Assembly: GCA_965644295.1 (NCBI GenBank)
Contig: CBFFRP010000645.1
Location: 1-64,000, forward strand
DNA length: 64,000 bases
From: Paraphysomonas bandaiensis
Taxonomy: Eukaryota; Protista; Chrysophyceae
Reading direction: 5' to 3'
Within the stretch, counting starts at the first letter, position 1; every line of letters begins with the position of its first letter. The position numbers and the translations under genes were made by a program. The notes under the pieces are model-generated. The model was not told where the DNA came from and ran no database searches. It saw nothing but the letters and a program-made list of their open reading frames with translations. Positions 31,281 to 64,000 of the stretch are shown here, piece after piece.

Positions 31281-31329
31281 GTTTAGCAGGATTGTATAGC
31301 TTAGATATGATATGGACGACTATATATGC

Positions 31330-31925
31330 ATGTATGTATGTATGTATGTATGTATGTATGTATGTATGTATGTATGTATGTATGTATGTATGTATGTATG
31401 TATGTATGTATGTATGTATGTATGTATGTATGTATGTATGTATGTATGTATGTATGTATGTATGTATGTATGTATGTATGTATGTATGTATGTATGTATG
31501 TATGTATGTATGTATGTATGTATGTATGTATGTATGTATGTATGTATGTATGTATGTATGTATGTATGTATGTGTGTATGTATGTATGTATGTATGTATG
31601 TATGTATGTATGTATGTTTGTATGTATGTATGTATGTATGTATGTATGCATGGATGTATGTATGTATGTATGTATGTATGTATGTATGTATGTATGTATG
31701 TATGTATGTATGCATGTATGTATGTATGTATGTATGTATGTATGTATGTATGTATGTATGTATGTATGTATGTATGTATGTATGTATGTATGTATGTATG
31801 CATGTATGTATGTATGTATGTATGTATGTATGTATGTATGTATGTATGTACAGTATGTATGTATGTATGTATGTATGTATGTATGTATGTATGTATGTAT
31901 GTATGTATGTATGTATGTATGTATG

Positions 31926-31954
<29 letters not shown>
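31330..31954. repeat. (TATG)n microsatellite, ~625 bp, between divergent genes
   Basis: Near-perfect tatg tetranucleotide array with a few substitutions. Confidence 0.98.
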
Positions 31955-31957
<3 letters not shown>

Positions 31958-34720: not shown

Positions 34721-37700
34721 ATGGCTAATATCGCCAAGACATCACCAGCAGTCTATCGTGGGTCATCATTTGGTATTAAATCCTCATCCCAGCCCTCCTC
34801 TCTACCGGTTCATCCTCTTAATCCCTGGTATCTATCATCAGGTGAACACACGCTCTATCTACCCAGTTACATGCTCTATGTGTGTGTTACATGCTCTATG
34901 TGTGTGTTACATGCTCTATGTGTGTGTTACATGCTCTATGTGTGTGTTACATGCTCTATGTGTGTGTTACATGCTCTATGTGTGTGTTACATGCTCTATG
35001 TGTGTGTTACATGCTCTATGTGTGTGTTACATGCTCTATGTGTGTGTTACATGCTCTATGTGTGTGTTACATGCTCTATGTGTGTGTTACATGCTCTATG
35101 TGTGTGTTACATGCTCTATGTGTGTGTTACATGCTCTATGTGTGTGTTACATGCTCTATGTGTGTGTTACATGCTCTATGTGTGTGTTACATGCTCTATG
35201 TGTGTGTTACATGCTCTATGTGTGTGTTACATGCTCTATGTGTGTGTTACATGCTCTATGTGTGTGTTACATGCTCTATGTGTGTGTTACATGCTCTATG
35301 TGTGTGTTACATGCTCTATGTGTGTGTTACATGCTCTATGCGTGTGTTACATGCTCTATGTGTGTGTTACATGCTCTATGTGTGTGTTACATGCTCTATG
35401 TGTGTGTTACATGCTCTATGTGTGTGTTACATGCTCTATGTGTGTGTTACATGCTCTATGTGTGTGTTACATGCTCTATGCGTGTGTTACATGCTCTATG
35501 TGTGTGTTACATGCTCTATGTGTGTGTTACATGCTCTATGTGTGTGTTACATGCTCTATGTGTGTGTTACATGCTCTATGTGTGTGTTACATGCTCTATG
35601 TGTGTGTTACATGCTCTATGTGTGTGTTACATGCTCTATGTGTGTGTTACATGCTCTATGTGTGTGTTACATGCTCTATGTGTGTGTTACATGCTCTATA
35701 TGTGTGTGTTACATGCTCTATGTGTGTGTTACATGCTCTATGTGTGTGTTACATGCTCTATGTGTGTGTTACATGCTCTATGTGTGTGTTACATGCTCTA
35801 TGTGTGTGTTACATGCTCTATGTGTGTGTTACATGCTCTATATGTGTGTGTTACATGCTCTATGTGTGTGTTACATGCTCTATGTGTGTGTTACATGCTC
35901 TATGTGTGTGTTACATGCTCTATGTGTGTGTTACATGCTCTATGTGTGTGTTACATGCTCTATGTGTGTGTTACATGCTCTATGTGTGTGTTACATGCTC
36001 TATGTGTGTGTTACATGCTCTATGTGTGTGTTACATGCTCTATGTGTGTGTTACATGCTCTATGTGTGTGTTACATGCTCTATGTGTGTGTTACATGCTC
36101 TATATGTGTGTGTTACATGCTCTATGTGTGTGTTACATGCTCTATGTGTGTGTTACATGCTCTATGTGTGTGTTACATGCTCTATGTGTGTGTTACATGC
36201 TCTATGCGTGTGTTACATGCTCTATGTGTGTGTTACATGCTCTATGTGTGTGTTACATGCTCTATGTGTGTGTTACATGCTCTATGTGTGTGTTACATGC
36301 TCTATGTGTGTGTTACATGCTCTATGTGTGTGTTACATGCTCTATGCGTGTGTTACATGCTCTATGTGTGTGTTACATGCTCTATGTGTGTGTTACATGC
36401 TCTATGTGTGTGTTACATGCTCTATGTGTGTGTTACATGCTCTATGTGTGTGTTACATGCTCTATGTGTGTGTTACATGCTCTATGTGTGTGTTACATGC
36501 TCTATGTGTGTGTTACATGCTCTATGTGTGTGTTACATGCTCTATGTGTGTGTTACATGCTCTATATGTGTGTGTTACATGCTCTATGTGTGTGTTACAT
36601 GCTCTATGTGTGTGTTACATGCTCTATGTGTGTGTTACATGCTCTATGTGTGTGTTACATGCTCTATGTGTGTGTTACATGCTCTATGTGTGTGTTACAT
36701 GCTCTATATGTGTGTGTTACATGCTCTATGTGTGTGTTACATGCTCTATGTGTGTGTTACATGCTCTATGTGTGTGTTACATGCTCTATATGTGTGTGTT
36801 ACATGCTCTATGTGTGTGTTACATGCTCTATGTGTGTGTTACATGCTCTATGTGTGTGTTACATGCTCTATGTGTGTGTTACATGCTCTATGTGTGTGTT
36901 ACATGCTCTATGTGTGTGTTACATGCTCTATGTGTGTGTTACATGCTCTATGTGTGTGTTACATGCTCTATGTGTGTGTTACATGCTCTATGTGTGTGTT
37001 ACATGCTCTATGTGTGTGTTACATGCTCTATGCGTGTGTTACATGCTCTATATGTGTGTGTTACATGCTCTATGTGTGTGTTACATGCTCTATGTGTGTG
37101 TTACATGCTCTATGTGTGTGTTACATGCTCTATGTGTGTGTTACATGCTCTATGCGTGTGTTACATGCTCTATGTGTGTGTTACATGCTCTATGTGTGTG
37201 TTACATGCTCTATGTGTGTGTTACATGCTCTATGTGTGTGTTACATGCTCTATGTGTGTGTTACATGCTCTATGTGTGTGTTACATGCTCTATGTGTGTG
37301 TTACATGCTCTATGTGTGTGTTACATGCTCTATATGTGTGTGTTACATGCTCTATGTGTGTGTTACATGCTCTATGTGTGTGTTACATGCTCTATGTGTG
37401 TGTTACATGCTCTATGTGTGTGTTACATGCTCTATGTGTGTGTTACATGCTCTATGTGTGTGTTACATGCTCTATGTGTGTGTTACATGCTCGTGTGTGT
37501 TACATGCTCTATGTGTGTGTTACATGCTCTATGCGTGTGTTACATGCTCTATGTGTGTGTTACATGCTCTATGCGTGTGTTACATGCTCTATCTACACAG
37601 TTACATGCTCTATGCGTGTGTTACATGCTCTATGTGTGTGTTACATGCTCTATGTGTGTGTGTTACATGCTCTATGTGTGTGTTACATGCTCTATATGTG

Positions 37701-40262
37701 TGTGTTACATGCTCTATGCGTGTGTTACATGCTCTATGTGTGTGTTACATGCTCTATGTGTGTGTTACATGCTCTATGTGTGTGTTACATGCTCTATGTG
37801 TGTGTTACATGCTCTATGTGTGTGTTACATGCTCTATCTACACAGTTACATGCTCTATGCGTGTGTTACATGCTCTATGTGTGTGTTACATGCTCTATGT
37901 GTGTGTTACATGCTCTATGTGTGTGTTACATGCTCTATATGTGTGTGTTACATGCTCTATGCGTGTGTTACATGCTCTATGTGTGTGTTACATGCTCTAT
38001 GTGTGTGTTACATGCTCTATGTGTGTGTTACATGCTCTATGTGTGTGTTACATGCTCTATGTGTGTGTTACATGCTCTATGCGTGTGTTACATGCTCTAT
38101 GTGTGTGTTACATGCTCTATGTGTGTGTTACATGCTCTATGTGTGTGTTACATGCTCTATGTGTGTGTTACATGCTCTATGTGTGTGTTACATGCTCTAT
38201 CTACACAGTTACACGCTCTATCAACCCAGTTATATGCTCTATCTACACAGTTACATGCTCTATGTGTGTGTTACACGCTCTATCTACACAGTTACATGCT
38301 CTATGTGTGTGTTACATGCTCTATGCGTGTGTTACATGCTCTATGCGTGTGTTACATGCTCTATGTGTGTGTTACATGCTCTATCTACACAGTTGCATGC
38401 TCTATATGTGTGTGTTACATGCTCTATCTACACAGTTACATGCTCTATCTACACAGTTACATGCTCTATCTACACAGTTACATGCTCTATGTGTGTGTTA
38501 CATGCTCTATGTGTGTGTTACATGCTCTATCTACACAGTTACACGCTCTATCAACCCAGTTATATGCTCTATCTACACAGTTACATGCTCTATGTGTGTG
38601 TTACACGCTCTATCTACACAGTTACATGCTCTATGTGTGTGTTACATGCTCTATGCGTGTGTTACATGCTCTATGTGTGTGTTACATGCTCTATGTGTGT
38701 GTTACATGCTCTATGTGTGTGTTACATGCTCTATATGTGTGTGTTACATGCTCTATGCGTGTGTTACATGCTCTATGTGTGTGTTACATGCTCTATGTGT
38801 GTGTTACATGCTCTATGTGTGTGTTACATGCTCTATGTGTGTGTTACATGCTCTATGTGTGTGTTACATGCTCTATGCGTGTGTTACATGCTCTATGTGT
38901 GTGTTACATGCTCTATGTGTGTGTTACATGCTCTATGTGTGTGTTACATGCTCTATGTGTGTGTTACATGCTCTATGTGTGTGTTACATGCTCTATCTAC
39001 ACAGTTACACGCTCTATCAACCCAGTTATATGCTCTATCTACACAGTTACATGCTCTATGTGTGTGTTACACGCTCTATCTACACAGTTACATGCTCTAT
39101 GTGTGTGTTACATGCTCTATGCGTGTGTTACATGCTCTATGCGTGTGTTACATGCTCTATGTGTGTGTTACATGCTCTATCTACACAGTTGCATGCTCTA
39201 TATGTGTGTGTTACATGCTCTATCTACACAGTTACATGCTCTATCTACACAGTTACATGCTCTATCTACACAGTTACATGCTCTATCTACACAGTTACAT
39301 GCTCTATGTGTGTGTTACATGCTCTATCTACACAGTTACATGCTCTATATGTGTGTTACATGCTCTCTCTACACAGTTACATGCTCTATATGTGTGTGTT
39401 ACATGCTCTATCTACACAGTTACATGCTCTATCTACACAGTTACATGTTCTATATGTGTGTTACATGCTCTATGTGTGTGTTACATGCTCTATCTACACA
39501 GTTACATGCTCTATCTACAGTTACATGCTCTATCTACACAGTTACATGCTCTATGTGTGTGTTACATGCTCTATCTACACAGTTACATGCTCTATCTACA
39601 CAGTTACATGCTCTATGTGTGTGTTACATGCTCTATGTGTGTGTTACATGCTCTATCTACACAGTTACATGCTCTATGTGTGTGTTACATGCTCTATCTA
39701 CACAGTTACATGCTCTATGTTTGTGTTACATGCTCTATGTGTGTGTTACATGCTCTATCTACACAGTTACATGCTCTATGTGTGTGTTACATGCTCTATC
39801 TACACAGTTACATGCTCTATGTGTGTGTTACATGCTCTATCTACACAGTTACATGCTCTATATGTGTGTGTTACATGCTCTATCTACACAGTTACATGCT
39901 CTATCTACACAGTTACATGCTCTATGTGTGTATGTGTCAGTCACCAATGGGGTACAGGTGCTCCTGATTTTTCCCCTCGACCATCTGTAGCTAAGAGATT
40001 ATATTGTGAGGCAATTGGAGGGGACACGAATGAGTCGATCGACACCGACTCACAACCGAATAATAAACGAGTGTGTCGACCAGATGGAGAGAAGAAAACT
40101 GCTGTTGATATTGCGGCGTTTGCTGCTGCATTGAAGAAAGAGCGTGAAAATGCTGATTCTTTTACCGAGAAGCTGTTCGACATTTTAACTGTCAATATGC
40201 ACTCTAAACGTGATGCCAAAGCGAAGGACAACGTCGAATACAATACAGCTGATAGTAAATAG
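34721..40262 (+). CDS. Orphan hypothetical protein (~141 aa); predicted exons 34721-34841 and 39958-40262
   Basis: Non-repetitive ATG-initiated 40 codons end at G|gtgaac. A phase-matched tacag|gt acceptor at 39957 continues into a charged, non-repetitive frame (GAPDFSPRPSVAKRL...AAALKKERE...*). No family recognised. Confidence 0.5.
34848..39930. repeat. ~5.1-kb minisatellite of 20-22-bp units (gttacatgctctat + gtgtgt or ctacaca)
   Basis: Roughly 250 tandem units (length divided by unit size) are directly visible. Confidence 0.99.
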
Positions 40263-41404: not shown

Positions 41405-44400
41405 TTACACCACAGAGATTTCAATCTCACTGGTGGACTGCAATGGACCACCTTGTCCAATGTACCCACCATCATCTACCTCAATCTTTATACTATCCAG
41501 GAGACCAGGAATACATCCACTCTCCCCACTGCATATATATTTCAAAGACGCTAGGGCCGTATTGATCTTGTCAATCGGACCATATATCTCTAATACTCTC
41601 TTGGAATCCACTATCATGTCAGTGCTCGATACCAATAAGGAGACATCGTCGGTTTGTTCAAAATAAACGTAACCCACTCCCGCCGATACCTTTGCAGTCA
41701 CTGGTGGCAGCTGTTCAAATCCAAACGAGTCGGTCAGCTGACTGACATCATCAAAATCTGGGTCTGATAATGCCACAAAGTCGATTGACAAGACAGCATC
41801 CAATCGGGCGGTCACAAGACCCTCTCTGGTAATTGATATTTCAGGGGCTTGGTTTTTGCCCGTAACCACGATACGTATGCTAGCAGTGCTACTTCCACTG
41901 GCATCGCGGATGTTACACAGATCGGAAGATGCATTCGCAGAGGTTGGAGCATCTCTCATAGAAAGTGTTGGATCCGAAATACTTTCAAAACTAGTGCACT
42001 CAGGCAAAGTGTCTTCTGCAGTAATTGTAAGAATCGCATCACCAACGGTAAGAGTTCCATTAGGCGGGAAATAATACAGTGTCCGCAGCATTATGTTAAT
42101 ATTTCCTAAAGTCCCAGATAGCACAAAACGTGACGATATCAGTGGGCCAGGAATAGTTGCGAGCACTTCCTCCGATGGCAACGGAGTTTTAGCAGTCGCT
42201 TGCAGCGGCTCCGCATATAAACTAACAATTTCTTGCATCGATTTCGATTGTCGTAAATACTTCAGTATGCGTTCGACGAACGCTTCATACTCTTCCCTCT
42301 CATCTTCTTCTTGCACAGTGTCAATACTTTTCGTGGTCCATCTTGTGCTATCCCCTGCAAGTGTCTCCACGAAGTCCACTCGCTCTGGTTCACCCTCTAC
42401 ATAGTCTTTGAATGGTCGCATCATGAATTCATCGAATCCAGCACTCAAGGCGTAGTTACGTTCGAGCACAAAGGATAGACTCGGTGCAGTACCAACAATC
42501 ACAAGATGATCAGGCCGGGAAGTTTCTCTCTCCCAATGGCGAATCATTCTAACAGCCTGCAGGCCATCCCAACCCTCTGACACTTCCATGTCCATAATTA
42601 CTAAATCAAAGGGGTCAGAAGCGCTACTGGTTATTTCGTTGTAAGCTTCAAGACCATTTGAGGAATGCACGACACTGTGGCCAAGACCAATGAGAACCGA
42701 CGTAAGTAATATCCGATTGCTTAATTCACTATCAACCACCAAGATGTGCAATATACCCGTGCCTTCATCAACATCGGCGCTATCCATGTACACTGGAGCA
42801 AGAACTTTAGGAACAGCAGGCAGCACCAAGTATCCCTTATCCACCTCTAATGTCAAAGTAATCTCGTCTCCAGGGCGGCCATCGATATCTGTTACGACTG
42901 CTGCCTGGTCAATTCCTCGTATAGCTTCTTCGCTCTGAGACCTGAATCCCCCTCTTGATAGCGCAGTTTGAGAGTGTTCGCCTCCTCTACTGGCAGCTAC
43001 AAATAGTTCACTTCCTAACACCCCCATTCGAGACGGGAATGCAGCATCAAGGCTCTCGTGGTCGAAGTAGAGATCATTGGATGTGCGCTGGAACACCCGC
43101 TGAGTACCTTCATACGTACCATCTGTACGCCACAACTGAGAGCCTCCAAACCCTTCTTCGGAGTCCACGCCTTCGACATACAGCCCATCTGTCGCAGTAA
43201 AAAACAAGTACTCGCTTTCATCGTGACCCATACTAGTCGGATGAATCAATGGCACAGTGGTCATATGTGATGGCACACTACTCGGTCTACCTTTACGGAT
43301 GTCTCGCACCTGCTGAGTTCCTGAGGGTGAGCCGTCAGATGCCCACAGTTCCCTTCCAGTGCTTCCATCATCAGCTTGGAAATAAAGCTTTCCTCGAAAC
43401 CATGTGAGATACTTGGGGTTTGAACCACTTATGCCAGGATTAATATCTTTTACCATGGTTGTACCTGATGTTGTGCCATCAGACTGCCACAGCTCATAAC
43501 CAGATGATGCAGTAGTGGCAGCAAAATATACAGGAAGAATAGGGTCGTTATCAACGTTTCTTGATGCCTCAAACCCATATGGACTTGAACTCTTACCACC
43601 CAATGCAATATCTACCCAACCTAGTGGCACAACACGTCCGCCGTTGGAACGTCTCCCTCCGCCTTCTCCGGGCCTATGCATGAACCACAGTTCGCGGCCC
43701 GATTCAGGATGAGTGGCGGAGAAAAACATCAGATGGCCTGCCACAGTCATGTACTTCGGATCGGATCCTGTTGATCCCTCGTACATCCCATCAGCCACAA
43801 GTGATACCAGCTCCGCCTGCCCGATGGACTCCCCTTTCGTTCTCCATAGCTCTCTGCCGGTATCACGACTGTTAGCTGAGAAGTACAAGTACTGATCAAA
43901 TGATGTAAGGTATTTTGGGTATGAGCCCGCAGTGCCTCTATAGACATCATCCAGTCGATAAGTGCCTTCAACTGTGCCATCCGTACGCCAGAGCTCGTTG
44001 CCAGTGTACTGCCTACATTCTTGGCCGCTACACGCTGCTAACAAAGAATTGGGAGTTCCACCTGCAACACACACAATCCCTGCGAAGTCAACTTCCCGCA
44101 ATACCTCAAGCGACGGTTCCACATCCGGACGTATGGAATCGCCCCTCCCAGCATGTTTATAAGCTAAAGTTTCACGCGAATCAGAGAATAAGAAATGAGT
44201 TCGCCTTACCCCACCCCACATATAGCCCTCCCACCCACACTTATTGACGTAAACAGATGATTCATACTCATGTCCCACTGCGGTCGCCTTTTCGAATTCA
44301 CCGTGGTCTCGAAACTCTTGGATACCCTGTCTCTCACCTCTTTCGCTGTACCCATATGAATGCCACATGTGCTCATGATCATGGTCATAATATGAAGTGA

Positions 44401-47400
44401 ATATCTTTTGGGCCTCATCAGTTGATGCCCAGTGATATCCGACCGGACAATCATACACTCGATCTGGGTTCCACACACTTGTATTTGATACCGCGTAATA
44501 GACCGCATGGTTAAACGTACTCTGACGAAATCCTTCACATTCGTCGAATGTGTCCGCGTTCTGCATCCATTGAATGTCGACACCATCCGCGCCAAAGTAG
44601 AGCACACCATTATGAGTCGTAAGAAAACTGGGTACAGACTCACGAACACCGGGGTTAATATCCATAAAGAGTGAGGCCACGTTAGGGAGCTTCGTGGAAC
44701 TATCACCAGAGGAAACGCTGTCACTTGACGACATACTCGAGTCCTGCCGCCACAACTCCCTACCACGGATACCATCATTTGCCTGGAAATACAGGAAACC
44801 ATTGTATTCAACAAAGTATTTCGGATACGAACTTCTCTCTCCAGGATATATATCAGAGGCCAAAGCCGTACTCCACTCAAGCTTTCCCACACCCCAATCT
44901 TCACGGTCAAACGGCTTGTGTGGTTCCTGAAACTTCCACACCTCGAATCCACTGCTGAGACGGCTATCATAACTCGATCCTACTAAACTGTTATCGATGT
45001 TAAGGTTACTGACTCCGTTAATTCGGATGAAATCGCCCTCAAAGACAGTGAAAATCGAGACTGCAGTCGAGTCGTCCCCAGTAGTGATGATAGGTGGATC
45101 ATTTTTCGGGTTGACGATAACACGGATATACCTCACATCTCCTGTCTGCTCTTCATCAACTATATCCGAGTTTGATACTGTTATGTACAAACCAGCGGAT
45201 CGACCAAAATAGTTTTCTGAAGGCTGAAACCCTATTGCACTTAATGCAACGTTGACAACAGATAATGGCGCGCGTATCGTAATATCATCAGGCTCGTTGT
45301 TATCCAGTATCAACCCTTCGAACCCACTTGACACCCCACTTCCTGATGCCGCACTGTGCTCCTGCAAGCCGACCATGTGAACTGAACCGAATGCCGCCCT
45401 AATATTGAGTCGTATGACGCCATCATTCGCAACTTCATCAATTGCACGTACAGAGGACCCCCTTATCACCAGCAGATCGGAGTCCTCATCCATGTACAAA
45501 GCATTTGTATCAACAACAAGTGCAGAGAGCATATCGGCTGACATACGATGAGAGTCGTAAATCTCGCCTGGTACATGCAACACAGGATTGTCCTGAACCG
45601 CTTGCACGTGAATTCGAACCAATTTTGTTACAGATACTATATTCGAGGCATTACCCAAATCTTCGACGGTAATATTCAAAATATCGAATTCATCATTGAG
45701 AGCAGAGTTCCAATTAATATCTGGTTGGTAAATCAGAGAGTCAACAGCCTTGTTAATGTCATGCAATCTCCCCTCAAAAGTAACGCTCTTCCACCAAATG
45801 TAGGTATCAGCAACAGAATGGCGAGGATTGTCCTCCGTGGTGTCCTTGCTATTAACGCCAGTATAACGTTTTCTTTCCGCGAGAGTTCCAGATATTGGAA
45901 GCTGGCTCAGTCTGGAACGCTCCTCGGTTGTATTGGGGGTGTTTATCACAGATAGACCACTTAGAGAAATAGGCATGACAGCCCCATAGTTAGTCGATAA
46001 GTACATGCGCAACATGCCACTCTCTTGTTCACGATAAACTGATTCGTTCCAACTTACGGTTTCATCAAATGGGTCATGACGCTTGTAGGTCGGTGGTCCA
46101 TCAATAACCTCGGTGTAGTCCGCATCTGACACTCGAATATCTGGAATCACTATGCGGCTGTCTTCCATAACGTGCTGAAGCTGTGTAGGTGCATATAAAA
46201 CCGGGGCATCATCTACGGGCAAAACTCTGAGAGGAATAGTCTCATTCGACCACTTTGCACCACCAACACCATAGTTTCCACGGTCATTGACGTAAACGGA
46301 CAAGTAGTCAGGACCATAATAATCCGTATATGGTTTGTATTCCAGTGATGAGAGACATGTATTTAGTTCCTCTAGTGTCCCATACACAGAAATATTTCCT
46401 TTGTTTTGGGTGCTTACGAGTACCACAAGACCATTCGCTGGAGCTGTCGGTAAGAAAACGGTTCCGTGTTGGACAGAGATCACAAGAAGAAAAACGGCCC
46501 CTGAATTGTAGGCATCGATATCGTCGTCATGAACTGAAATACCTGATATATTGGAAACTACATCTTCAAGAAGATCAATTGTCCTTATGCTCTCTATGAC
46601 CCGGCATGTGTTCTCTTTAGGTGGCAATTGTGTCATTTTCGTGATACTCACTCGACCAATTCCACTTTCACAAGGAGACTCTTTAGTAACAGCACCTGGA
46701 ACAACGATATAGGGGACGTTATTGGGACCTTCAGATACTGTTATAAACATATCCACAGAGTCTGTCAGCGATATTTTCTCCACCCCTTCATATATGCTGT
46801 TGTTGCTAAGGTCGGTCAAGAAATCACTGTGTCCAAGGTCGTCGACAAAAAAATGAAGAGAGTCCAACAAACCCAACTTGGCGTAATTCCAGTGCGGAAG
46901 GGGATAGTAGATTAAATGCGACACCGCAATATTTAGCTGCTCTACTGGCCCTTTCAAATGAGTTTCCTTATCCATTTCTCCTGAGCCGACAAGTAGCGTC
47001 ACATTCGATGGGAGAGTAGGAAATGTTACCCATCCGTAATCAACAGATATCCGCATAAATATGTCATGATCATAAGAGTCAACATCATCAAGAGAGATAT
47101 GCGACCCTACAAGGAGACTTTCGTCTTCCCCAGTGCTGAGAGATGCCTGGAGGCTGGTCCACACAGGAGCATCATTTATAGAACGGATCTCCATAGGTAG
47201 CAATTTCGTGTCACAAAAACTTTCCAGATTTTGCGTGTTTTCGCAGACTTTGACTGATATACTATCATCACCAAAAAAATTCTTATCTGGAGTGTACATA
47301 AGTTGGTCGATCATAGAATTAAGTGTCTCAATTTGAAATCCGATTAGTGACACAGTTCTCCCGTCAGTGTAGGCGTTGATAAGTCTGGCGACAGTGTAAT

Positions 47401-50400
47401 TGGCGGTACTTATCGAACCATGATATGAAGTAATCGTAACCTCCCATGCGTGACGTTTCACCAAGCCAAAGTCGTCCCCATACTCGTCAATATCGGATAT
47501 ATATATTTCTCCCAGCTCATAGGAAGTATCTTCATCAATGTACACTGTTGGTACATGGATGACATCCCACGGCATATTCTCACTCGACGTAATAAGCGGC
47601 TCCAATAGCTCCATTCCGGGAAGATGAACACACGCGTAATCATTAGTGGGGTTGACTCTCACTAATATCTCTGCATTGGACATAGCTTCATCGCCAAAGT
47701 CATTCATGTGTAATACATCGACAGCAACAATGTTGATTCGCGCCAGAGAACCCGAATCCTTGCTGTTAAAATTACGTGAAGGCGAAAATATGATACCACC
47801 AAGAGCACTATTGATATCGTTCAGCTTGCCTTTAAACTTAATGTAGGAACTAGCAATCCCCTTTCCAATTAGAAACTCTAACGACAACGGAACTTCCTCA
47901 AAACTGATCACGCCATGAGGAGAGCTTACTGTAATTTCAATTAACTTCTGACCACTACTATGTGTCCTTGGCAAAGTATTGGGTAGGTGCCATCCCCGTG
48001 AACCCTCGGGATCATCACCATCTGACACATGTATCCCACTTATGAAAACTGCTTCATCTTCATACACTGCAAAAATATCATCCGGTGTTACTATAGTGGG
48101 TGTGTCAGGCTTCCCCCTAACATTAACTGGCAACACTATCCTATCAGTGAGTTCACAAGAGGAGCTATATTTCGATTCTCTCGCATAATCACACAACGGA
48201 CCCAAACCCGTATTCCCCAAATCATTAATGGTTATAACGATTTCGTCTGATCCGAAATATTCGGCATTTGGAAGGTAGTACAGCCCATCTAAAGCTACGC
48301 TTGTGTAATCCACACTGAATGTGAGTTCAAGAATGGAAAAAAGGTTGTGGTTGCTGTGCTCCACAATCGTAAATGGGACAGAAGACGCTGAATAATCCAC
48401 CCCAAAAGTACCATTCATAGCGTACAGTGACAACTTCATTTCTCCATTATTTGCCTCCATAGCATCAACGTCACGGACATGTATTCGGGAGATTGCACAC
48501 CTTGAGTCTTCCACACAAAGAAGCGGCGTCACATCGATAACACTGCGTGACAGTTGGTCGTATTCAGCCATGAGAAAATCATGAATAGCAAGATTATCTA
48601 TACCAACTACTGGAGGGTCATTAGCCGGCTCAACAATAATATCAACGTAGCTCTCATCACTCAGAAAACCAGCATCCGTGGCAGTGATTTTAATCATATC
48701 CAGTGTGGTTATACCACGAACTGCGGCATCTCTGTTTCCTGTGCCTGAATTCCAATTCAGGTCTGGGATATATAACATATGTTGAAGAGCCACATTCACA
48801 TCGCCCAACGGCCCTCTCATCACAATATAATCATCATGCAATCCAGAACCGTAGTCGAAAGAAATCGTGTCAGGCACTCTGTACAGCGATAATTTACCGT
48901 GTGAAGTATTCAGAGTAACAACAACAGTTGAATCAATAATACTTCCATTCGGAGACACCAGATTCGAAGCATACTTAAGGAAATCAATCGATCCTTTATC
49001 AGCATAGGTCGTGTTATATATGGGGTCATTGTTCAAGGGATTACGGCCTATATTCTCAGTGTTTCGAAGAATATATCTGTCACGCTGCGTTACAAGTGCT
49101 ATATCCGGGTCATGTATTCTAAAGGAAAGAGCCGACATGTTTACGACTTCTTCAGATCGCACACCTACGGCAGTAGATACTTCACGCACAACATCTTCAG
49201 ATACACTTCCAATTATACCAGTTGAGTCCTCCATTGTTAGAAGAGCTGAAAACGATGGAAGGGCTATATGTGGACGATCATTAACGGCATCTACCTCAAG
49301 AACTATTTTTCTCGTCAAGTGCCTTGGCCCACCGAAGCCAATATTACCTAAATCGTTAATGGTAATCTCAAAGACGTCGTTCCCAAACCAATTCATATCC
49401 GAGGTATATGTCAGTGTTCGAAGCACGGATATCAACTGGTGGTACCTTCCATGTAAACATATTTCTCTGAATCCTACCATCTCTCCTTCGTAAAAGACAG
49501 GAGTATTCGATATGATGGAAATTGAGCCCAGATCGGACACTTCCAGGGTGCCATATTGCACTGACAATGTTGCATTGAACATGTTTCCGACTATTGAATT
49601 ACGATTAGTATAATCATCTGAGAGCCATGACCCATACTTCGCCCAAGAAGCGGTCAGCATAACTTCATTTTCAACATTGTATATATCAATATCGGGGTCA
49701 TCGATTGCGAAGTCATGCCCAAGAGAGTATGTCTCGTCTTCTCTCAAATAGGCGACTCCAACATCCCACGAAGTTTCGTTATCATACAACACTCCCAGTG
49801 CTGCCGATTGAAGATGAATCACAGGCGGATCATTCAAGGGTAGAATGTGAACTAACAACTTTTTATTTACAGCAGCGGAGGTTTCGTTGTCAATAGCGGA
49901 CACATGACCATCCCACGCAGAAATACGTATGTAGTCATAGCCATTCGCATTTGTTGCCGGCATATACTTCAAGGTAGACAGCAGGAGGTTGACCTCAAGC
50001 AAGTCACCGGCAACAATCAATGCACCCCCGTCTACAGCTAAGCTTCCGTTGTCTTGATCGGTAGGTATCGGTTGTCCACGACTAATTGTAACGCTAGCAG
50101 CAGAGCCAATATTCGGGCTCTCTCGCTGCACGCTAACGGTTCCACGATCACATGTGATTAGAACTGTAAGTTGTCCCTCGCCAGAGTCGATATCTTTGAT
50201 CTGAATGCCGTGCTGTACAACTTTTCTGTGAGGATCTATACCACCCATGCTACCTACAATAATCATGCCTTCAGTCGACATAGCAGTCATATCACTCTCA
50301 GTGCCACCCCCAAAGAGAATAAACTCACCACCTAGTCGAACGTCAGTATCCTCGTATATAACGAGAGTATGTCCGTCACGCAATGGGGTTTCTCGCCACA

Positions 50401-53400
50401 GTATCTCAGGAGGGTCGTTAACTGGTGAAACAGTCACCATGAACGTGAACATGGTATCACTAACTGCAGAAAATGTGTCCAATGCTCTATTATTGCGGTT
50501 CGATAGCCTAATGATGACAGTGACATTTCCATTCCAATTATTTTCCGGTTGGTACTGTAAGCCGCTTACGGCAGTGGCTATATCTGCTGGAGACCCAGCA
50601 ATCATAACAGTTGTGTGCCAGTCAAGCAAAGACCCTCCTGCAGTATTCACTACTCCCTGATAGCCGGAGTGAATACGGAATCCATAGTTATGAACTCCAT
50701 TCCTGACCTCTCGCACTCGGGTCACAGATCCCACACCAGTCAGTCGATTCCCTTCAACTGCGAGCAGAGATGGTGACAGCGCGTAGGGTAACGCAGAATC
50801 CATCAGCATAGATATGTACCAGGTATACCCCCTTTCCTTATTGGGACCTGTCCTACCCACAAATAAGCGCCCCGTTCCAAGCAGAGGGTCTGTCATCGAA
50901 TCGAGTGACATCAGAGCATCTCTGAGTTCTACTGCGCTGATATCATATGGCAATGGCACAGTCAAGTCGCCTCCATAAGACAGCCGGAATGACCCACCCA
51001 CGAAATTTGAAGGTCTCACTGTTCGTACAGAAACTGACTGGTCGTTGTGGCTTTCTGTCGGAAAATGTGCAACTCGCACATTTAGATAGTTGGCACCATG
51101 ATATATAACTGTCCATGATACGTACGGTGATTCCTCAGCTGCATCACCAATACCAGCCACATACTTAGATACAGTGATTGAATCCACGAATGAAGAAAAA
51201 AAGGAAACCGATGACAAGAGACTTTCGAGAGATTCACCCTCCTTAGTACCAGCTGCTTGGGCATACGGCTCATACGGACCTTTCACCTCTTGCTCCTTCA
51301 TAGAAACAGTAGCTACATATATCGGCCCAATAACCTCATACGCCGATATATTAACTGGGTGAGATACTGTGAGATAGAAAGCAGGATAGTCACTACTAAC
51401 AATGGTTGACCTCGCTTGGCTATGATTGGCAGACACAAAATCGTATCGTATTTCAATTACTTCCTCATGGTGATTGGATTCAGTAGATACAGCAAGTACA
51501 CGTGGACTTCCGAAGCCAGGTGTCACTCGTGACACTAACACATCAGCTGGGTAATGTACAAGACCAATATCACCAGACTCTACCGTCCAGTCCCCAGTCA
51601 AATTCGTAGTTATAGGCTGAATTAATGGTAACTCGGCACCGCCACTCATTCCAGAAACTGCAAAATACGCTATAGTCCACGTGTAATTGCTTTCTTGGCC
51701 TACGTTGGAACGAGTAACTGAAACAGCATCAATAGACTCCATGTCCATCAAAATCGATGCCATCATGTCTGCTGTTGCGTTAAAAGCAATCGGCGAGCTC
51801 ACATCCATCCCAAAACCGAGCCTGAAGTATCCACCTAATGAATTACCAGGACGTGATCGCACAACTTCAACTCTTTCGATCACTCCGCCACTAGTTTCGA
51901 CAATCGAATTTCCATATACAGTCATCAATGAAAAGTCAAAACTAACCTCATGGAAAGTAACTTGCCATTTACAACCTGTCCTACAAGCTCCATCGCCCCT
52001 GTCTGTATCATCTCGCTCGACAGATACCTTACCCCCTCCACATCCTTCAAGCATCTTCTCGATCTTCGCCTGAATAGAGTGTCCAATTCCGCGTCCATCC
52101 CCATATTCACTGCGCTCTGAACTTCTCATAGCAACAGCGTTGATATGAATATCATCAGTAATCAGTTGCACAGACGCTGGTGCACTACCGTCCTCATATA
52201 CAGGACGCGGGGCTCCACACTTGGCGCCTTCCACAACATTCAGGCTCAGTCTAAAAGTAGCGTTCCAGAAATGGCTGACGGGGTAAGAATTTAACAAGTA
52301 TGTTTGTATGGACTGTATTTCATCAACGTGATACGCAACTGTCATTACCTCCTGAGTTTCTATAGTGCCTCCATGTGCAGCAGTCACAACTGCCTCCAAC
52401 TGAAGTGAACTTTGTGTTGTACGGTCCAAACCATTCGGATTAGTCACAGTCAGCTGCGGAAAGTCAAACACGTCGTCCTCGTCTACAGTAAGGTGTACAT
52501 CGCTGCTAGAAATCGAAACAGTTGGGGATGATCTAGATGTAATCACTTGCACTGGAAGGATAACTGAGGATGTAGCACCTTTGGAATCTGTTATCGTAAT
52601 ATTGATAATGTCACTGCCATATGTATACGATTCCGAAACATACTCGGCACTGAGCAACAAAGCATTTACAGAAGAAAGATCACCTCTACATTCCACCCAG
52701 AAAGAGTCTCTACTAACTACCTCAAACACTTTAAACTGTGCCATAGACACGTCTGAAAATGATACGTTGCCGTGACCAACTGCAATCGACATATGGTAGA
52801 CTTCACCGTCTGTCATGTCCACGTCATAAACAATAGACTTATTCCTAAAACTATCAGAAACAACGGGAACTGCTGTATATTCACTGACATTGATGAGGCC
52901 CCACAGTTCAATATCAGGGGCATCATTCACTGGTAAAATTGTTAATGTCACATTATCATGGGCAGTCATATGAACTCTATCTTTTCCATAGTTTCCGAGG
53001 TCGTCAACAAATATATCCATGTAGGCATTTCCATTGAAATTTCGTTCTGACTGTACGTACACTTCACGAAGAGCGCTATTTATATCATCAATTCTTCCTT
53101 GAAATGACAAAGCCCTATTGAACGTAATGTCATTCGGCATTGTGGAATTCTTTTTGAAAAAGCAGTGTGTACATTGTACATGTACTCGAGCAGATGTCAC
53201 TAGCTGAGAAGACCGCCGCTTTGAGTACAGTGGCGAATTGCTGTCACGTAAAAACAGAACATCTGGATCGCTAACAGAAAAAGGGAGTGGAATAGCAGCA
53301 TCCTCGTCCACCCTCAATTCAGTGTAACTGATAACGGGTGGGTCATTTTCTGGTACCACCGATACCATTGAAACGGCAGTGGAATTAAGGCTTTTGGTAC

Positions 53401-56400
53401 GGTCATCATACACAGACAATGTAACTCTAACATTGCCATGGAAGTTCTTCGGGAAAGCAAACGCGTACATGCGACATGCTGTCAGCAATGACTTGATCTG
53501 AGTGGTAAAGTGAACTTCATTACTTCGTGCATCTTCAGCGGTAAATATAGTATCGGACACGTTTTCGTGAACCTGCGGGAGGCTGATGTCTACAAGGTCA
53601 TTATAGTTTTCTGTAATTCCAACGATATCAACGTGAAAACTACCATGATACAACTCTTCGCCTGAAAACGGATGACTATAGACTAAATCGTCTACAATAT
53701 TAGCGGCGGACAACAGTGAATCTTCTGCAACGCGAATATCTTTGAGAATGAGAATAGGCGGTTCTCTTTCGTCAAGCACTTCAAACGATATCGTTTTAGA
53801 ACTCTGCTTTGGACCATCAATTCCGAAGTTTCCCCTATCATTGACAGCAATATTGACAGTATAATCCGAATTCTCATGCATACCATCCGGAATTGAATAT
53901 GATATCGCACTGATGTAGCAGTTTACAGCGTCAATATGACCAACAATTGTGAGGCTGGAGTACGTAAGAGGCTCAAACATATCGTCCGTATCATATCTGC
54001 GGTCAAACCAGTTTACAATACTCTCGCGCCTACTGGAAGCGTCATTACAAGTCTCAGCACTGATAATCCCAGTGAAATAATCAATGAATTCTATATTACA
54101 GACAGAGGCAATATGAGTGTCCACACGCAACACACCACAATCAGGAACCGATATATCTACATGGATAGTCCCAGTGTTTTCGTTCTTGCCATCGAACACG
54201 TCTACATCCAGTATATACAACTCAAGGTCCGCTAGCGACATTTCTTCGTTCCTCTTAATTTTAGTAAGCATCTCGTACTGATCTAACATAGAAACGACTG
54301 GCTCATCATTTATCGGCAGTAAAAAAAGACTGAGCTCGTACACCTCCTTCGTATCACACTGAAAGTAAATAAGAGCAGTCATTTCACCATGAGAATTCTC
54401 TCTCGCAGTAAAGACCAACGTAGGCAGGATCTCGCTCAATTTCGAAACACTACTGTAAACTCGAAGAGCCATGTCACCATGTGATTTGGATATGTACGAC
54501 ACTTCCGAGCCTTCCCAGTCACCCTCATAACCATTTATAAAAGAAAAATGTCCATATGAGGAATAAAACTCAATCGTACACACGACTGATGACGACTCAT
54601 GACCAGAAGTTAAAAGAATAGATTCCGTACCAGTAAATCTGACTGGATTGTCCTCTTCACCAACCACTGCATGACGTGGTACAGTCAAGTATGGCGCGAC
54701 AGCAACTGAACATACGTTGAACTCAACAACAGCGGTTGTTGTGCCTTTATCGTCCAGGCCGTGAGTAGCCACATGAGCATTATCAGATATGAACAATTCA
54801 ATGCTAACTAAATCTGTCATATTATATTCAATAGATTCACGGGACCCAGAAAAGTATTGCACATTTCCCTGTGATAAGTACGATGTGAGTACGTCCGGGG
54901 TTCCTCGCAGTAGTACCGCAGATGAAAGAGTCCCATCATCCATGACATCAAGGTCCGAGAAAGACTTCTGATATTGAGGAATCGAAGCAACTACACTGCT
55001 GTGTGAAAGTTGCGACTGAATTCGTAAGTAGAAGATCGGCATCCAGCGTGAACCAGGAACACTAACGTGACTTTGAATGGACACAAAGCTCAAATCAACC
55101 ACATCACCTGCGGATATATTTCTAGCTACGGTATCGATGATTATTAGTGGCATTTCAAAGACCGGTAAAATATCTATTTCAAATGATGCTCGTGTTGAGG
55201 CTACCAATTGTTTGTCGTCTTCGATATCCAATTGCAGTGATACGAAATCGGACGCGGAATTTTCTGCATATGGGGTGTACAAAATATCATCAAGAAGACT
55301 TCGAATGCGAGCAACATCGATAGTTAACGATACGTGCTTCAAGCTGGTCGATACCACTTCAAAAATTCCATCACTGCTGCGATAGCTGTCAATACTTAAC
55401 TGTCCTTCGCTTGCGGATACAATTAGAGCGGCTCGACATGCGTTGGGGTTTACACATGAACCAACAACAGATTGGATGGAACACGCATCACCAATGTAAA
55501 AACTGCTGTTAACTGCAACTTTAGCCACAGTTGGACAGGCTACAGCAACTTTCATTGGAATGTCGACCACAATACTAAAAGATGCAGACACTGACTCGGC
55601 TCTATTAAATGGAAGAGATGGCTCAATATTTCCAGGGCGTCCAAGTACAGTATGTGTCAGAGAGGTAACCAAAATTGTAACAGTGTCGGTATGAAGAGGC
55701 ATAACAGCAGGCTGATACTGCAGATACGATAACACGGTAGCGACTTCTTCTTTTGAGATAAAAAATGATATTTCTCGACTGCTCGTGGATTTTATGGCAT
55801 TATAAGGCTTATAAGACTTTAAATTTTGTACAAATGCGTCCGATAACGCGAGTTTACCTTCATTACACCACACTTCGATTAATAAAGGGTAGTAGTCATC
55901 GATATCTGTAACAGTAAACGCTCGAAGATACATGGGGGCTCTTGAAGTAATCACTTGTCCAAGAACATACGGGGATGAATAATTGACTGATATCACAGGA
56001 GCATCATCCACACTGTCGACAAAAACTAAAAACTCCTTAGAGAGAGCTGATGGCACATTGCTAGTTGAATCCTTGAGTGTAGACACTGAAAATAAAACAG
56101 ACCCTACAAAATCCCCTGGTGGTGTATACACAATTTCAGCTATAGCTTCATTGATGTCATCCACACTCGACGCACGGATATGAAGCAAAGAACCATGGCT
56201 GAATATATCTACTCCGCGCAACATCTCTACAGTCATCGGCAACAGTAGTTGGCCTTGTTCACATGATATTAGTACATCAACAGTATCAGCACTATCACAT
56301 AAAACCGATATGTTCAAATTTCGTAACATACTGTCTTCCTTCATATGTACTGTAATATTTGGTACAACAATAGACATTCCCCCAACAGAACCAGAATCTG

Positions 56401-59400
56401 ACACAACTCGGATGGGTACCATGCGAGATACAATTTCAGCCACTCCAAAGGGTTCCCATCTAGAGACACTGAGATGCAAAACATCATCAGATGTGCCTTC
56501 AAAGCGTACATTACCCAAAATGCGGTTAATTGTATGCTGTGGCCCAACAATACTATGTGAATTCGGTTTATTTTGTAGTTTATACCAACCAACTTCAACA
56601 AAGTCATTAGATGTCGCATCAAACTGATACGATGGCAACGAAATAACTCCACCTTTCTCCGTAGAAATATTCACCGACAACATTTCAGAGCCGGTCAGAT
56701 CATCTGGATTCGCCACGCCGGCAAGCACCAGTGGCACAGCTACTCTAGCTGGTGCAATAGCACGAGCAAGGAACACATCTACGGTGATAGGGTCCTCCAC
56801 GGGAAGAACAGATACTGAACATGATGTTGGATGGGATTTCGACTCGTCTGGTACGAACCTACCCATATAAGCGAAAAACTGCAGATCAATAATGCCGTAG
56901 TAGTTGGGAAATGGCTTTATCACTATCAGCTGAAGCAGCTCAGCGATATCGACAATTGGTCCACTGAGACTATAAACACCTTCATGTCGAGCGAACTCAA
57001 CTGCACCCACAAAAGAATGTGTAAACTCAATTGAACAATCTTGCACGCCAGCAATATCGATGGCCACTATATTGGCATCTTTTACTACATGATCAAATTC
57101 CAAGGACAACTGAAGCCGAGCTACAGAGTCTTCATCTACCTCAGAGTCGAAATTCACAACACGCAGTTTTGGCAAGTCGACTGTGGGAAGAACATAGACA
57201 GGAACTGTAGCCACAATTTCATGAATTGCTTCCATATTCCCTATGCCCACTGTGTCATTCCCAACAAATGCTCCCATATCAAGAGCAACTATGCGTAAAG
57301 AGTCTGATTCCACCCAGTTTTCTTGAATCACCTTAAGATTACCTTGGCCACTGAACAGCAATGGATTATAATCAATAGAAAGATCGATATTAGGTCCAAA
57401 TGCTACAGATCCTGACACGTCACCAACTCGACTAATATTGAACTGATTCGGTTCCCAGTTCGCAAGGGAGGTGAATTCAATGATGTACTCATAGCCAACT
57501 TTATATCCATCATCCGATTCATTCGCAAACGTAAACACGGTGACATCATTGATACCTTCCAGCTCTTCCAGTGCAACTTCAATAACTTCTGGTTTCGCGC
57601 CGACCTGAATTGATCTCGTTCTCGCTCCATTGCAGATCAAATTGTACTCGCCAGAGAGAAAGTCGCCTTTGGTCCGCACCAACTCAACACGTATGTCTCC
57701 GCGTAAGTCGCCCCTTCTATTGTTAGAGCTTAACACAACAGAGTTGTTCTTTGCAGATAGGAGAGGAAAGTTCACCCCATGTTTAGGTGGGATATTTAAG
57801 AATCTCACTTCCCATGAATAAGTCTCTTTTCCATAGGAATCCTCGTACGGTGATCGTGAAACCACAACGATAGGCTTAAAATTGTCACTACGACTGGAAT
57901 TCGTACCAACTGTAGACTCGAAGGCCATGTCAAAGCAATGGTCAACAAGCGCTTGTATAGCAAGTTCGAGCGAATCAGCACTTACATTTGTCGAGAGTAG
58001 CTCAGTTTGAGCATATGCGTTTCCTACCGACGTGTTAGATTGGATAAAATATGAGCAATCAAGTGACAATCTAAAGGCACTACTATTGTGATCAACGCTT
58101 CCCAATGTGGTAGACACTGTAGTAATCTTTTGCACCTCTTCGTGATGGCGCAATGAGAATATAGAAAGCACATAGATCTTATTTCGTCCGTCAGTTTCTA
58201 CAACCGAGTTCCACTCTTCATCTGGAATGTACTGAAGCGAAGCAAGGGCTTTGTTGACATGGTACAATGACCCCATAAACGTTAAGTTTCCTTTGATATC
58301 AAAGTCAGAAAAAGTGATCCCTTCATGATTGGACAAGAAAAGTTCACCATGCCCTACCATAAGCGACATAGCTACTTGTGCTTGCATCTGTGCAGCCGCT
58401 GTCAAATGATCAGAATCAAGTACAGAAATACCCGGCAGATTTGTCATTGTATCTTCGAAGAGTACTATTCCTCTTGTAGGAAATAAAACTGTTGGAGAAT
58501 CATCAACAACAGATATTGATATGTTCAGGGTCTTTTCAATGGGAATGGAAGCCAATGCCCCCATGCCAGACATCGCAGCCAGCTTGAGGTGGTCCTCGAT
58601 CACAGCACGATCCCACTTTCCATGTGTCACGAAGTGTCTTGCAGGGAGTGTCAACCCATTGGAAGGAAAATAAACGATGCTGGACAACAGAGACGATATA
58701 GATTCCTTATCTCCATTGAGGCGATACGAGCTTCTCAACGGGCTCAGCGATATTGGCTCAATCGACTTGTCCCACTCCATGTCACAGTCCACACATATGC
58801 CCCACAAATTGTCAACATCCATATTATATGTCTGAGAACAATACAGGCGGTCGTTTCTCTGTCCAGTCATATGTATACAAGATGAATACGCGTCACCGCC
58901 GTGAACAAAAGGGAAATAGCACCTCGTAGATGTATCACCGTCAAGTGCAGCACCAGGAAGTGCGGTGTTCGTTGGAGAGAGTAAGCATTTCTCAGAAGTC
59001 AAAGATACGTCACTCCCACTGCCGATGTGCAAATTTTCTACAAGACTACTCCCGAAATCTATTAAGAGCAACAAACTGTCTACGTTACCATTCGAATTTA
59101 ACGTAATATCAGTGACAGTGGTTTGCTCGAGCCCTTCCACCAAGCGAAGCTTGCTTTCAAGCTCAGATTGTAGACTCGGGCTGTTAAGTTGAACTTTAAA
59201 ATCAACTACCGGTTTGGTAGCAATTATTTCAACACTGCCCGACAAAGGTGACATACCAGCGACAAGTCGACGTGCAGAAAACACAAAATTTTCAGAAAAT
59301 TGTGACAGACAGATTCGTCCCTCCCAAACATCAGGTTTCAAAGCCACATCCGTGTTATCTCTAAGTCCACACTCCTCGTCAGGCATAAGAAGTGGAACGC

Positions 59401-62400
59401 TCCCCATGCTAGAAGGAAAAGTGACAGTCCAAGAATACACATGTTTACCCAAGGATCCCACCTCTGATGAGTACTCAGACCTGGCAACATCAACGCAGCA
59501 AACACCTGCTACATAGGACACCGCTGCTGCAAATTCATCATCCGAAGCATGAGCAGAAACCATAGTTGACGCTTCGTAAAGTGACAATGGAAACGAACCA
59601 GTCGATGCATCATACGACTTACTAGTGCTCCAAACCTCGGTCGAGGTATTATACACAGCAGTAACCGAAAACACCTGCACTTCATTAATAGAAGCAGATG
59701 ACCCTCGAGTAGTTTCAACGACATCAAGATGTGTCCATGGTGACAATGTCATATTCTGAATAAGAATGGGCGGTACATTCCCAGTCGATCCACTAACAAC
59801 ATAAAAATTACTATCAAAATCTTTCTCAGACTCAGATATAAATGTGATGGTGGTTGAAAACACCTCTTCCGGATTACCGCTCTCTGGACATATCCTTCCA
59901 GAAGTAGAATTCGACGTCAGAGACACTCCCGCCACAGTAGACAGTGACAAGAGAGTTTCGAACAAAGTACTGCCATCTCCTGAGCAAGGCTCACCAGAAA
60001 CCACGTCATTATTATCACAAAGTGGTAGAGAATCCGGTAGTATATTATCGTATATCCAGATATATCTAACAGCCTTTTCTCCCCGGAATGACACACTAAA
60101 AAATTCAGCATCAGGAACCATGTCGGATACAACAAAAGAGTCGAACAAGGACTCCGACGAACAGTGAAGAGTTTGAGTTTCATTTACTTGTGACCAGCGT
60201 GGAGTGTTAATTGACAGCAAATATCTATCACTCGATTGGGCATCACCGGGCGCTATACGCCTCACATCAACACTTTCGGAGCCTAGGCCAACCAAATCAG
60301 CATCTTCAATTGTAATATCAGGAACATGTATGGTAAGGTATTCATGGCTATCTAGCAAGTGGGACAGCCCTGATGACACAGAAACAGTAATAGTATATGA
60401 CGTTAATGGAACCGGTCCAACTTCACTCGTTTTCGTCGTCGAAACTTGGAATGCGCAGCTCTCGGCGATGCATATTATATCCTCCAGTGCCTTCGTAACT
60501 GTTGCACTCGTGGCTGATTCTGTATGATCTCCATTTCCAACGCTCATCCAAGATGTAGTTCGGGAATAGTTTGGCGAATCAATACGCAACCTAAATTTGC
60601 CGGATATTTTGTCGCCAACATCTCCTCGTGTGTGGGTTAGATATACTCTAGGAGATGGATATCCCAACACACCCGCAGTGTCCACACTCATTCTAGGTAA
60701 CTCCACAACTTCGTGAGACTTCACAACAGACACAGACCAAAGACAATTACCCTCGGGGTTATCACATCCTCGCGGGATTGTCTTGGTACTTCTGATCCCA
60801 GGGAGTCGGCTAAGACGAAAATCAACCTCATCCGCAGTCGCACGAACAGATATTTCTTGGGTTGATGCGGTTACTCCGTCAGGGTACTGAAATGATATTT
60901 TGATATAACCACCGAGGGGTTCTGTGCCTCGAACGATTTCCTCCACGTCAAAAGATATAGAATCATCGTTTTCAAACGGCAAACAAAGAGAACAATATTC
61001 CTCTTCCAGTATGTCAACATTGGTTGACCCTTCACTCCACACTACGTCGACGTTGTCGATTGTCCCACCAAGCGTCAAAAAAGTAAGTTTCCACGACCAA
61101 GAGTATATTAACGAGTCATCCAGTTCACCGTTTACGACGTTTTCAATCGATGTTAGTCCCAGCACATCCATTAAATCTACTGCATTTTGAAGTTGTACAG
61201 TAGTATCATCTGCACTCGCACTTGAATTGAAACGGATGACATGACTACGAAGTGGCTGTAGGCCATGGGAACGTCCACGACCAAACGATAAAACAAAATC
61301 CCCATGCAATGTATCATTATTTCTACTTCGTAAGGATATAAGTTGCTCTTCAGCCTGCAAAGATCCTTTCTCTGTTCGGTACACAGCAATGGAAGGAATA
61401 ATTGCACTCGAATTACTCGCAACAGCCGAGTGCACTTGAAACCGCAGAAGCGGTAAAACGTCCCGTGCTGCATTAGTCAGAAAAGTCACAAAGAGGTAGC
61501 CGTACAAAGAAGACGGAGACGTTTCGTTTCTCAACTGAAAACTCACTTGAACCTTTCCTATATTCTTTAGGCCTTCCAAAGCACCTTTCAACGATAGCGC
61601 AGAAGCCTCAAATTGGCGATTACCGTATAGCACAAACGCAGAAGCATCAGTAATATTGTAACCATCAAAAAATACAACCACATCTATATCGTTCATTGGG
61701 ATTTGTCCATTAGTAGAGTGGAGCTCAAGAGCCTGAGTTTCATATCTCCACGGTATTTCCACTCTTATGCCAATCGTATCAGCAACTTCCCTCTTCGACT
61801 TCCCTCCATGAAACCGCACCTCGACATCTTTTCTGAGAGGATATTCAAAGGCATGCGTGTCCTTTAGAAATGCAAAGTTGCCATATTCACCTGATGCTAT
61901 TACAGCACTAACATTGGGCAAAACAGTATTTGAGTCCTCCGCCTGTTCAGATAATATAGTCACACCACCGACCGCAAGCGCACTGTGCTCACTCACAACC
62001 AATGGACCAGTGTGATCAGAAGTATGTTCCCATACAAGTGCATTTCCGCTATGTGTATCAATGTCAACTTTGACAGAATACGTATAGGTCTTCACACAAG
62101 GATAAGATATATTATCCAGGCATTTTCCATAGAAACCATTATCAGACACGTAAATAGTGAGTACATCAGAATCACCATTGACGTCATTGCTATATATCTT
62201 CGCAGACCTCAACGCTTTCGTTAATGCCTTCGGAGTTCCCCTAATACTCAGTCTGTGCGGAGTATCAACAACGAGACGCTGACACCCGCTCCGGGCAAGG
62301 CCTGCAGATGATATATCTACATTTATCCCACTAGCAGAATCTATCCACAAGTCCAGATAGCCGATATCCAACATAGAAAGCGAAAAGTCTGTATCGCTGA

Positions 62401-64000: not shown

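Follow-up and report, generated by a model that had tools for sequence, protein, structure and literature searches.

Where do the accessory domains of a giant repeat protein sit, between its repeats or inside them? The question is raised by a stretch of 64,000 nucleotides from the chrysophyte Paraphysomonas bandaiensis (positions 1 to 64,000 of contig CBFFRP010000645.1, assembly GCA_965644295.1; hereafter the window), in which the open-reading-frame listing gives a frame of 7504 codons on the minus strand, encoding cadherin-like units interspersed with domains of quite other kinds. An initial annotation, made from the letters alone, had proposed that the modules are inserted within the repeats. 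We consider it very likely that the product is secreted and strings together about 41 cadherin-like units, of which four are split domains with accessory domains projecting sideways; we find the nesting to be real, conserved across stramenopiles and three levels deep.

In the proposed arrangement the chain would leave a beta-sandwich at a loop, form one or more complete accessory domains, return, and complete the sandwich that it had left, so that the backbone would be continuous and the accessory domains would point sideways. The third level is a module of 195 residues inside a propeller that is itself inside one of the split units, U29.

Split units and their pieces

The units, of 130-220 residues each over the whole protein, share landmarks that are common to ten uninterrupted units (residues 4500-6279; numbering is that of the window open reading frame (ORF), residue 1 lying at window 63919, and the full-protein number is higher by 1458) and to the last unit: an NDxP start, ED, D.D and a G.v.l strand, then, in order, a strand-helix segment G..iN.AL..L.Y.P, D.i.i.v.D.G and the next NDxP, with loops between landmarks that differ by up to about 50 residues. 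Two hidden Markov models (HMMs) were built, one from 11 clean units and one from 30 clean units including orthologous ones (153 positions), the split units being excluded from both; E-values are those of a one-sequence search. Both HMMs place the pieces around each accessory block collinearly and complementarily in the four units U5, U6, U18 and U29. The features, in the order of the protein, are as follows.

41405..64000, minus strand, window part of the giant ORF, an uninterrupted frame that continues past the window end
61760..62041, minus strand, U5 N-terminal half (HMM 14-63, E 5e-4, the weakest piece)
58745..61759, minus strand, U5 insert of about 1000 residues, about seven alpha/beta modules of a second type and then FN2 (Pfam fn2 and motif)
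58793-58921, minus strand, FN2 domain, residues 1667-1709 (PF00040 39.4 bits, cut-off 22.2, full profile 1-42)
58505..58744, minus strand, U5 C-terminal half (HMM 84-151, E 2e-6)
58184..58504, minus strand, U6 N-terminal part, strands A to E and helix (HMM 4-113, E 1e-20)
57311..58183, minus strand, U6 insert of 291-295 residues, two second-type modules of beta-beta-alpha-beta-beta topology (MAFFT, structure model)
57158..57310, minus strand, U6 C-terminal part, the last two long strands (HMM 108-153, E 1e-4)
52343..52543, minus strand, U18 N-terminal half (HMM 8-64, E 2e-5)
50645..52342, minus strand, U18 insert of 566 residues, four second-type modules (motif placement)
50402..50644, minus strand, U18 C-terminal half (HMM 84-151, E 1.7e-15)
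45083..50437, minus strand, run of ten uninterrupted units, the HMM seed (alignment and HMM)
45005..45106, minus strand, U29 piece a, residues 6272-6305 (HMM 8-44, E 1.5e-5)
42950..44962, minus strand, eight-repeat ELWxxDGT beta-propeller, residues 6320-6990, before strand B of U29 (TIGR04534 281.4 bits, cut-off 65)
44000..44587, minus strand, conserved 195-residue Cys/Trp-rich module between propeller repeats 2 and 3 (homologue alignment)
42770..42904, minus strand, U29 piece b, residues 7006-7050, between propeller and receiver-like domain (HMM 40-72, E 1.4e-4)
42239..42757, minus strand, receiver-like (REC) fold, residues 7055-7170, between strands of U29 (PF00072 35.3 bits scanned alone, cut-off 30.2)
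41885..42145, minus strand, U29 piece c, residues 7259-7345, after REC (HMM 86-123 and last strand, E 3.6e-7)
41408..41884, minus strand, last, uninterrupted unit, with the ORF stop right after it (HMM)

A complete unit precedes each block, the next complete unit is met only after the final piece, and in each of the four cases the pieces add up to exactly one unit. Complete repeats are therefore not found on both sides of each module, since a full unit is followed by partial pieces that sum to one; the split matches are collinear and no complete unit lies on the inner side of any module. With the HMM of 30 uninterrupted units all four split units were recovered at the places that the initial annotation had named, and the motifs at which it had seen the repeats resume, RLNGDKESISS..., ESDSLRIVALDMG and IAGSPADIATAV..., mark on the HMM map where the C-terminal pieces begin. 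For U6 its account has to be amended, as this insert lies near the unit end, before the last two strands, and not in mid-unit.

Alignment gives the same picture for U6. In a MAFFT set of intact U6 (457 residues), two orthologous slices and the 30 clean units, every one of the clean units falls on intact U6 in two blocks, query 7-106/110 and 405-455, and skips the insert. When U29, U18 or U5 was aligned without orthologue anchors the clean units scattered over the long inserts and were stable only at the true pieces.

An AlphaFold2 (AF2) model of intact U6 was built on the MAFFT alignment, and its predicted local distance difference test scores (pLDDT) are 74-96 over the N part; the C-part strands 407-415 and 434-445 reach 80-85. 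In a VIA-align comparison with a library of 48,161 chains, over 40 single domains of 90-110 residues, of Ig-like, cadherin-like or PKD type, span the model from about 5 to about 447, as judged from the first and last aligned residue. The model matches the cadherin-like modules of SraP (Z 8.1-8.3, root-mean-square deviation (rmsd) 2.3-2.5), the PKD domain 4xed (95 of 97 residues aligned) and EC1 of cadherin-23 (Z 7.0), with Z values much the same for PKD, BIg and MG domains; this places it in the seven-strand Ig-like beta-sandwich class, which is not cadherin-specific. Foldseek with the whole U6 model returned multi-domain matches that are meaningless and were set aside. At the level of the model, U6 is shown to reassemble as one sandwich. 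For intact U29, modelled by AF2 with 14 homologues, mean pLDDT is 60; pieces b and c have the expected order of strands and helix, propeller chains align over model residues 57-711 (Z 18-20, 300-330 residues) across the nested module, and receiver domains align over 788-958 (Z 17-20, rmsd 1.7-2.0). On the HMM map the three U29 pieces would appear to be parts of one unit.

Read on the U6 model, the insertion sites are all in loops. The first loop, before strand B, takes the propeller of U29, and a clean unit at residue 4500 has a loop of 45 residues there. The second, which lies between the D/E strands and the strand ahead of the conserved helix, takes the arrays of U5 and U18 and the REC-like domain of U29, and the third, before the last two strands, takes the two modules of U6.

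Several points weigh against nesting. The multiple sequence alignment behind the U6 model had the clean units pre-aligned across the gap, which means that the model shows compatibility and is no independent proof, and the VIA-align output, being the first and last aligned residue, does not give residue pairs. Piece a of U29 has pLDDT below 50, the N-terminal half of U5 is weak at E 5e-4, and a receiver domain outside the cell is unexpected. The same half of U5 has a collinear orthologue in the metagenome scaffold BUCK21-1_SAMEA6872848_METAG-scaffold_1105.

Some of these points would fit another explanation, in which the modules are beads on a string set between units and the pieces are decayed half-repeats or linkers that do not re-associate: some pieces are weak when taken alone (the N half of U5; piece b of U29, E 1.4e-4) and U29 piece a is poorly modelled. 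It would seem unlikely that this is so, as the pieces sum to exactly one unit, with neither overlap nor loss, in four cases out of four, the same complementary coordinates are seen in distant relatives, and the C part of U6 gives two core strands, confidently modelled within the span that single sandwich domains match. A second possibility is that each orphan half is completed by a neighbouring unit or by another molecule, by donor-strand complementation, to give a polymer, in the way that pilus- and cannula-type fibres are described as assembling (PMC12518558). This is less probable again, as the neighbouring units are complete by HMM, AF2 closes U6 intramolecularly, and the precedent of the bacterial RTX adhesins is intramolecular (PMC12077191).

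The gene and its relatives

The ORF belongs to a single intronless gene on the minus strand (C645:41405-68293 in contig coordinates) that stays open over 26.9 kb and encodes 8962 residues with a predicted mass of about 0.97 MDa. In the open-reading-frame listing the ORF starts inside the window, at 63919, and this does not hold: contig C645:64001-68293 adds 4.3 kb with 1458 residues, 11 more units and the N-terminus, and the start ATG at contig 68293 opens a signal-peptide-like N-terminus, MHHILLFYLITFTIYSTVTAQ. A hydropathy scan found no membrane segment in the giant protein. The stop codon follows directly on the last repeat unit and no additional unit was found downstream of it.

ELWxxDGT repeats together with tandem-95 or cadherin-like repeats are typical of bacterial giant proteins, and it might be asked whether the gene is an assembly chimera, a bacterial contaminant or a dead gene. 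We regard this as the least credible of the alternatives, with hardly any probability left to it, given that the frame is open over its whole length, that it is carried by a 195-kb contig with satellites in a eukaryotic genome of 62.5 Mb in which 18S rRNA genes are present, and that collinear relatives occur in independent metagenomes, in the Tara run ERR1711871 and in the genomes of oomycetes and brown algae.

Those relatives also carry the same split map, at 25-57% identity, in marine metagenomes, oomycetes and brown algae. In a search over 1.84 billion representatives, relatives collinear across the whole U29 region were found at 38-57% identity in marine metagenomes and Tara run ERR1711871. 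A metagenome relative of 7014 residues aligns as a single high-scoring segment pair of 6885 columns, and every insert that it covers is therefore kept. The closest long relative, on scaffold_1105 (ENA), is collinear across U5 and U6; its gene calls are two, of 4839 and 4571 residues, with a scaffold gap and a short stretch containing stops between them, and these are probably parts of a single gene of over 9000 residues, like that of the window. The scan for the locus in metagenomes gave one locus only.

A word-based search added, among oomycetes, Saprolegnia parasitica SPRG_09820, Saprolegnia diclina SDRG_06940, Achlya hypogyna ACHHYP_16742, Aphanomyces species and Pythium oligandrum, with Poli38472_000449 among the named homologues, and, among brown algae, Discosporangium and Choristocarpus. 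Many relatives have complementary and near-exact splits on the HMM, such as 5-73|73-151, 2-112|113-152 and 11-79|80-152, and in Saprolegnia an N piece at 12-40 is followed by the propeller and then by 51-151. The named stramenopile homologues are of the same family as the window protein, with which they have many units in common; their propeller is nested at the same loop and contains the same 195-residue module. Unlike the window protein, those of oomycetes have two propellers, each nested at that loop, and no REC domain. As seen in excerpts of the 2010 Pythium ultimum genome paper (PMC2926784), oomycete cadherins are treated there as classical EC-domain genes, four in number, and those excerpts make no mention of nesting. 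We found no paper that names the locus tags of the homologues or ELWxxDGT, and no description in the literature of a split-domain design in this stramenopile protein family.

In its widest form the interpretation is more tentative, and we would rate it a little short of evens: stramenopiles may share an ancient family of secreted cadherin-like split-domain fibres of about 1 MDa with three levels of nesting, in which the propeller and its 195-residue module would be a new ligand-binding head and the receiver would be a domain co-opted for use outside the cell, without phosphorylation.

Just downstream of the giant gene is a 20-bp satellite of 250 copies over 5 kb (window 34866-39931), and a (TATG)158 run lies at window 31321-31955, also downstream. 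The overlapping long "ORFs" at 31-40 kb and the extreme AT skew are due to this run and the satellite. The same genome has a second intronless giant ORF, on the minus strand of another contig (C236:79924-102426, 7491 residues from the first ATG); it was tried as a paralogue and rejected, having only two such cadherin-like units and being otherwise different.

Accessory modules

The propeller of U29 matches TIGR04534 in eight stretches, and both the score above the family cut-off and the propeller fold place it in this family. Its ELW repeats start at residues 6326, 6388, 6642, 6690, 6743, 6809, 6857 and 6928, and the second and third starts, 254 residues apart, enclose the Cys/Trp-rich module of 195 residues, a further level of nesting that extends the architecture beyond the initial annotation, from which it was absent. 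This module has many nearly invariant positions and a mean identity of 47% to relatives, about the same as that of the propeller blades; all the stramenopile relatives that were tested have it, and none of the four bacterial ELWxxDGT proteins tested does. It matches no family of Pfam or NCBIfam. Adhesion domains of Lcl_C or InvE_AD type came up as weak ESM Atlas leads (about 0.89) and were not adopted.

The REC-like domain belongs to the receiver class by its score above cut-off and its CheY-like fold. The phospho-acceptor Asp is present in the window protein, and most relatives have N, E, S, G or Q at that position; the Lys position is Arg in the window protein and variable elsewhere, and the acidic pair is likewise unconserved among relatives. 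Because neither the Asp nor the Lys is conserved among relatives with a REC domain, the domain would seem to be a structural or binding module with no part in signalling. The FN2 domain, with four Cys in its translation, has the features of its class.

The second type of alpha/beta module occurs in some 13 divergent copies of 100-160 residues in three blocks. An HMM iterated from one unit recovered two copies only, the modules being too divergent, and the remaining ones were located by motif and by visual inspection. No Pfam or NCBIfam family matched the module, and its look-alikes in the ESM Atlas are in unnamed eukaryotic clusters. The best fold matches of the second-type module, at U6 model residues 127-271, are tail and capsid proteins of the mycobacteriophages Patience and Bxb1 (Z 8.5-8.6, 85-96 residues).

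The family has members in oomycetes associated with fish or with plants, in brown algae and in marine protists, and within it the propeller with its nested module, the FN2 domain and the unnamed alpha/beta modules are marked out as the likeliest bearers of function in proteins that have not been studied. Domain annotation of such proteins would miss or miscount split units. For protein engineering the chain is a useful, clean natural example of one repeat type that tolerates the insertion of whole domains at three loops.

Comparison with known systems

The units are closest to cadherin and bacterial cadherin-like repeats (Cadherin_4, Cadherin_5, Big_9, tandem-95 and the CDHL modules of SraP), with which they share the beta-sandwich fold (Z 7-8.3) and, it would seem, the NDxP linker and conserved E, DxD and D positions. 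They differ in being longer (130-220 residues), in having the extra strand-helix segment G..iN.AL..L.Y.P, and in sequence scores that are mostly under cut-off: in the Pfam scan only Big_9 passes (27.4, cut-off 23.6), Cadherin_4 (23.3 against 25.1) and Cadherin_5 (17 against 26.5) are under, NCBIfam tandem-95 reaches 72.3 against 90, and a weak profile match (E 0.02) relates the units to a protocadherin strand and DxNDxP region. Among the units aligned at each position, acidic linker residues are E29 in 24 of 26, D30 in 23 of 26, D42 in 23 of 33, D44 in 26 of 33, D122 in 23 of 36 and D147 in 21 of 27, with P149 in 24 of 27 and N146 also kept in most units. This pattern (E29, D30, D42, D44, D122, N146, D147, P149) is presumably the layout of cadherin Ca2+ linkers, although no LDRE-type motif was identified among the linker motifs of the units. 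If so, Ca2+ bound at cadherin-type linkers may stiffen the units.

Amongst extracellular adhesion proteins, insertion of a domain into one that is itself an insert is known from integrins, both in the beta subunit (PSI/hybrid/beta-I) and in the alpha-I domain inside the integrin propeller. There is no sequence relation to the window protein; integrins have a transmembrane anchor and are not built by repeating one unit.

The nearest parallel is with the bacterial RTX adhesins AhLap, FrhA and MpIBP, which are giant fibres of tandem Ig-like extender domains (PMC12077191, PMC10865825). In their split domains a ligand-binding domain buds from an Ig-like domain that is completed afterwards, and projects off the fibre axis (PMC12077191, PMC10865825); in AhLap a vWFA domain emerges from an RTX roll and carries its own insert (PMC12077191, PMC10865825). 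By analogy with these adhesins, the molecule may be a fibre outside the cell, with side branches that bind ligands on a surface, a matrix, prey or partner cells, and a cellular role in adhesion, matrix or prey capture could be envisaged. The initial annotation had spoken of a continuous rod with side branches. The continuity of the chain and the side-branch placing of the modules are borne out; the rod is a well-grounded inference, and the acidic linkers together with the RTX-adhesin precedent suggest that it may be rigid. The scale, lorica, stalk, hair or prey-capture structure that it had also proposed would be conjecture at the level of sequence. That the modules lie within the cadherin-like units, as it had held, is supported by the HMM map, MAFFT, the AF2 model of intact U6 and the conservation of the splits in relatives.

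Despite the shared chain of Ig-like extender units with split domains that project accessory domains, there are clear differences from RTX adhesins. The window protein is eukaryotic, starts with a signal-peptide-like N-terminus and ends with a cadherin-like unit, and Pfam scans of the window ORF (E <= 0.01 over the whole; <= 1 over most of residues 700-7265) gave no RTX, HemolysinCabind or type I secretion family. Its host units are opened at three different loops, its inserts come as arrays of up to about eight domains (about 1000 residues), and the inserted domains are others, namely the ELWxxDGT propeller, REC-like, FN2 and the unnamed alpha/beta module. The rule that split domains mark the ligand-binding heads of giant adhesins, which comes from Gram-negative bacteria, may thereby be extended to eukaryotes. 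Judged by its sequence, the window protein is not an RTX adhesin, but it follows the same split-domain design principle.

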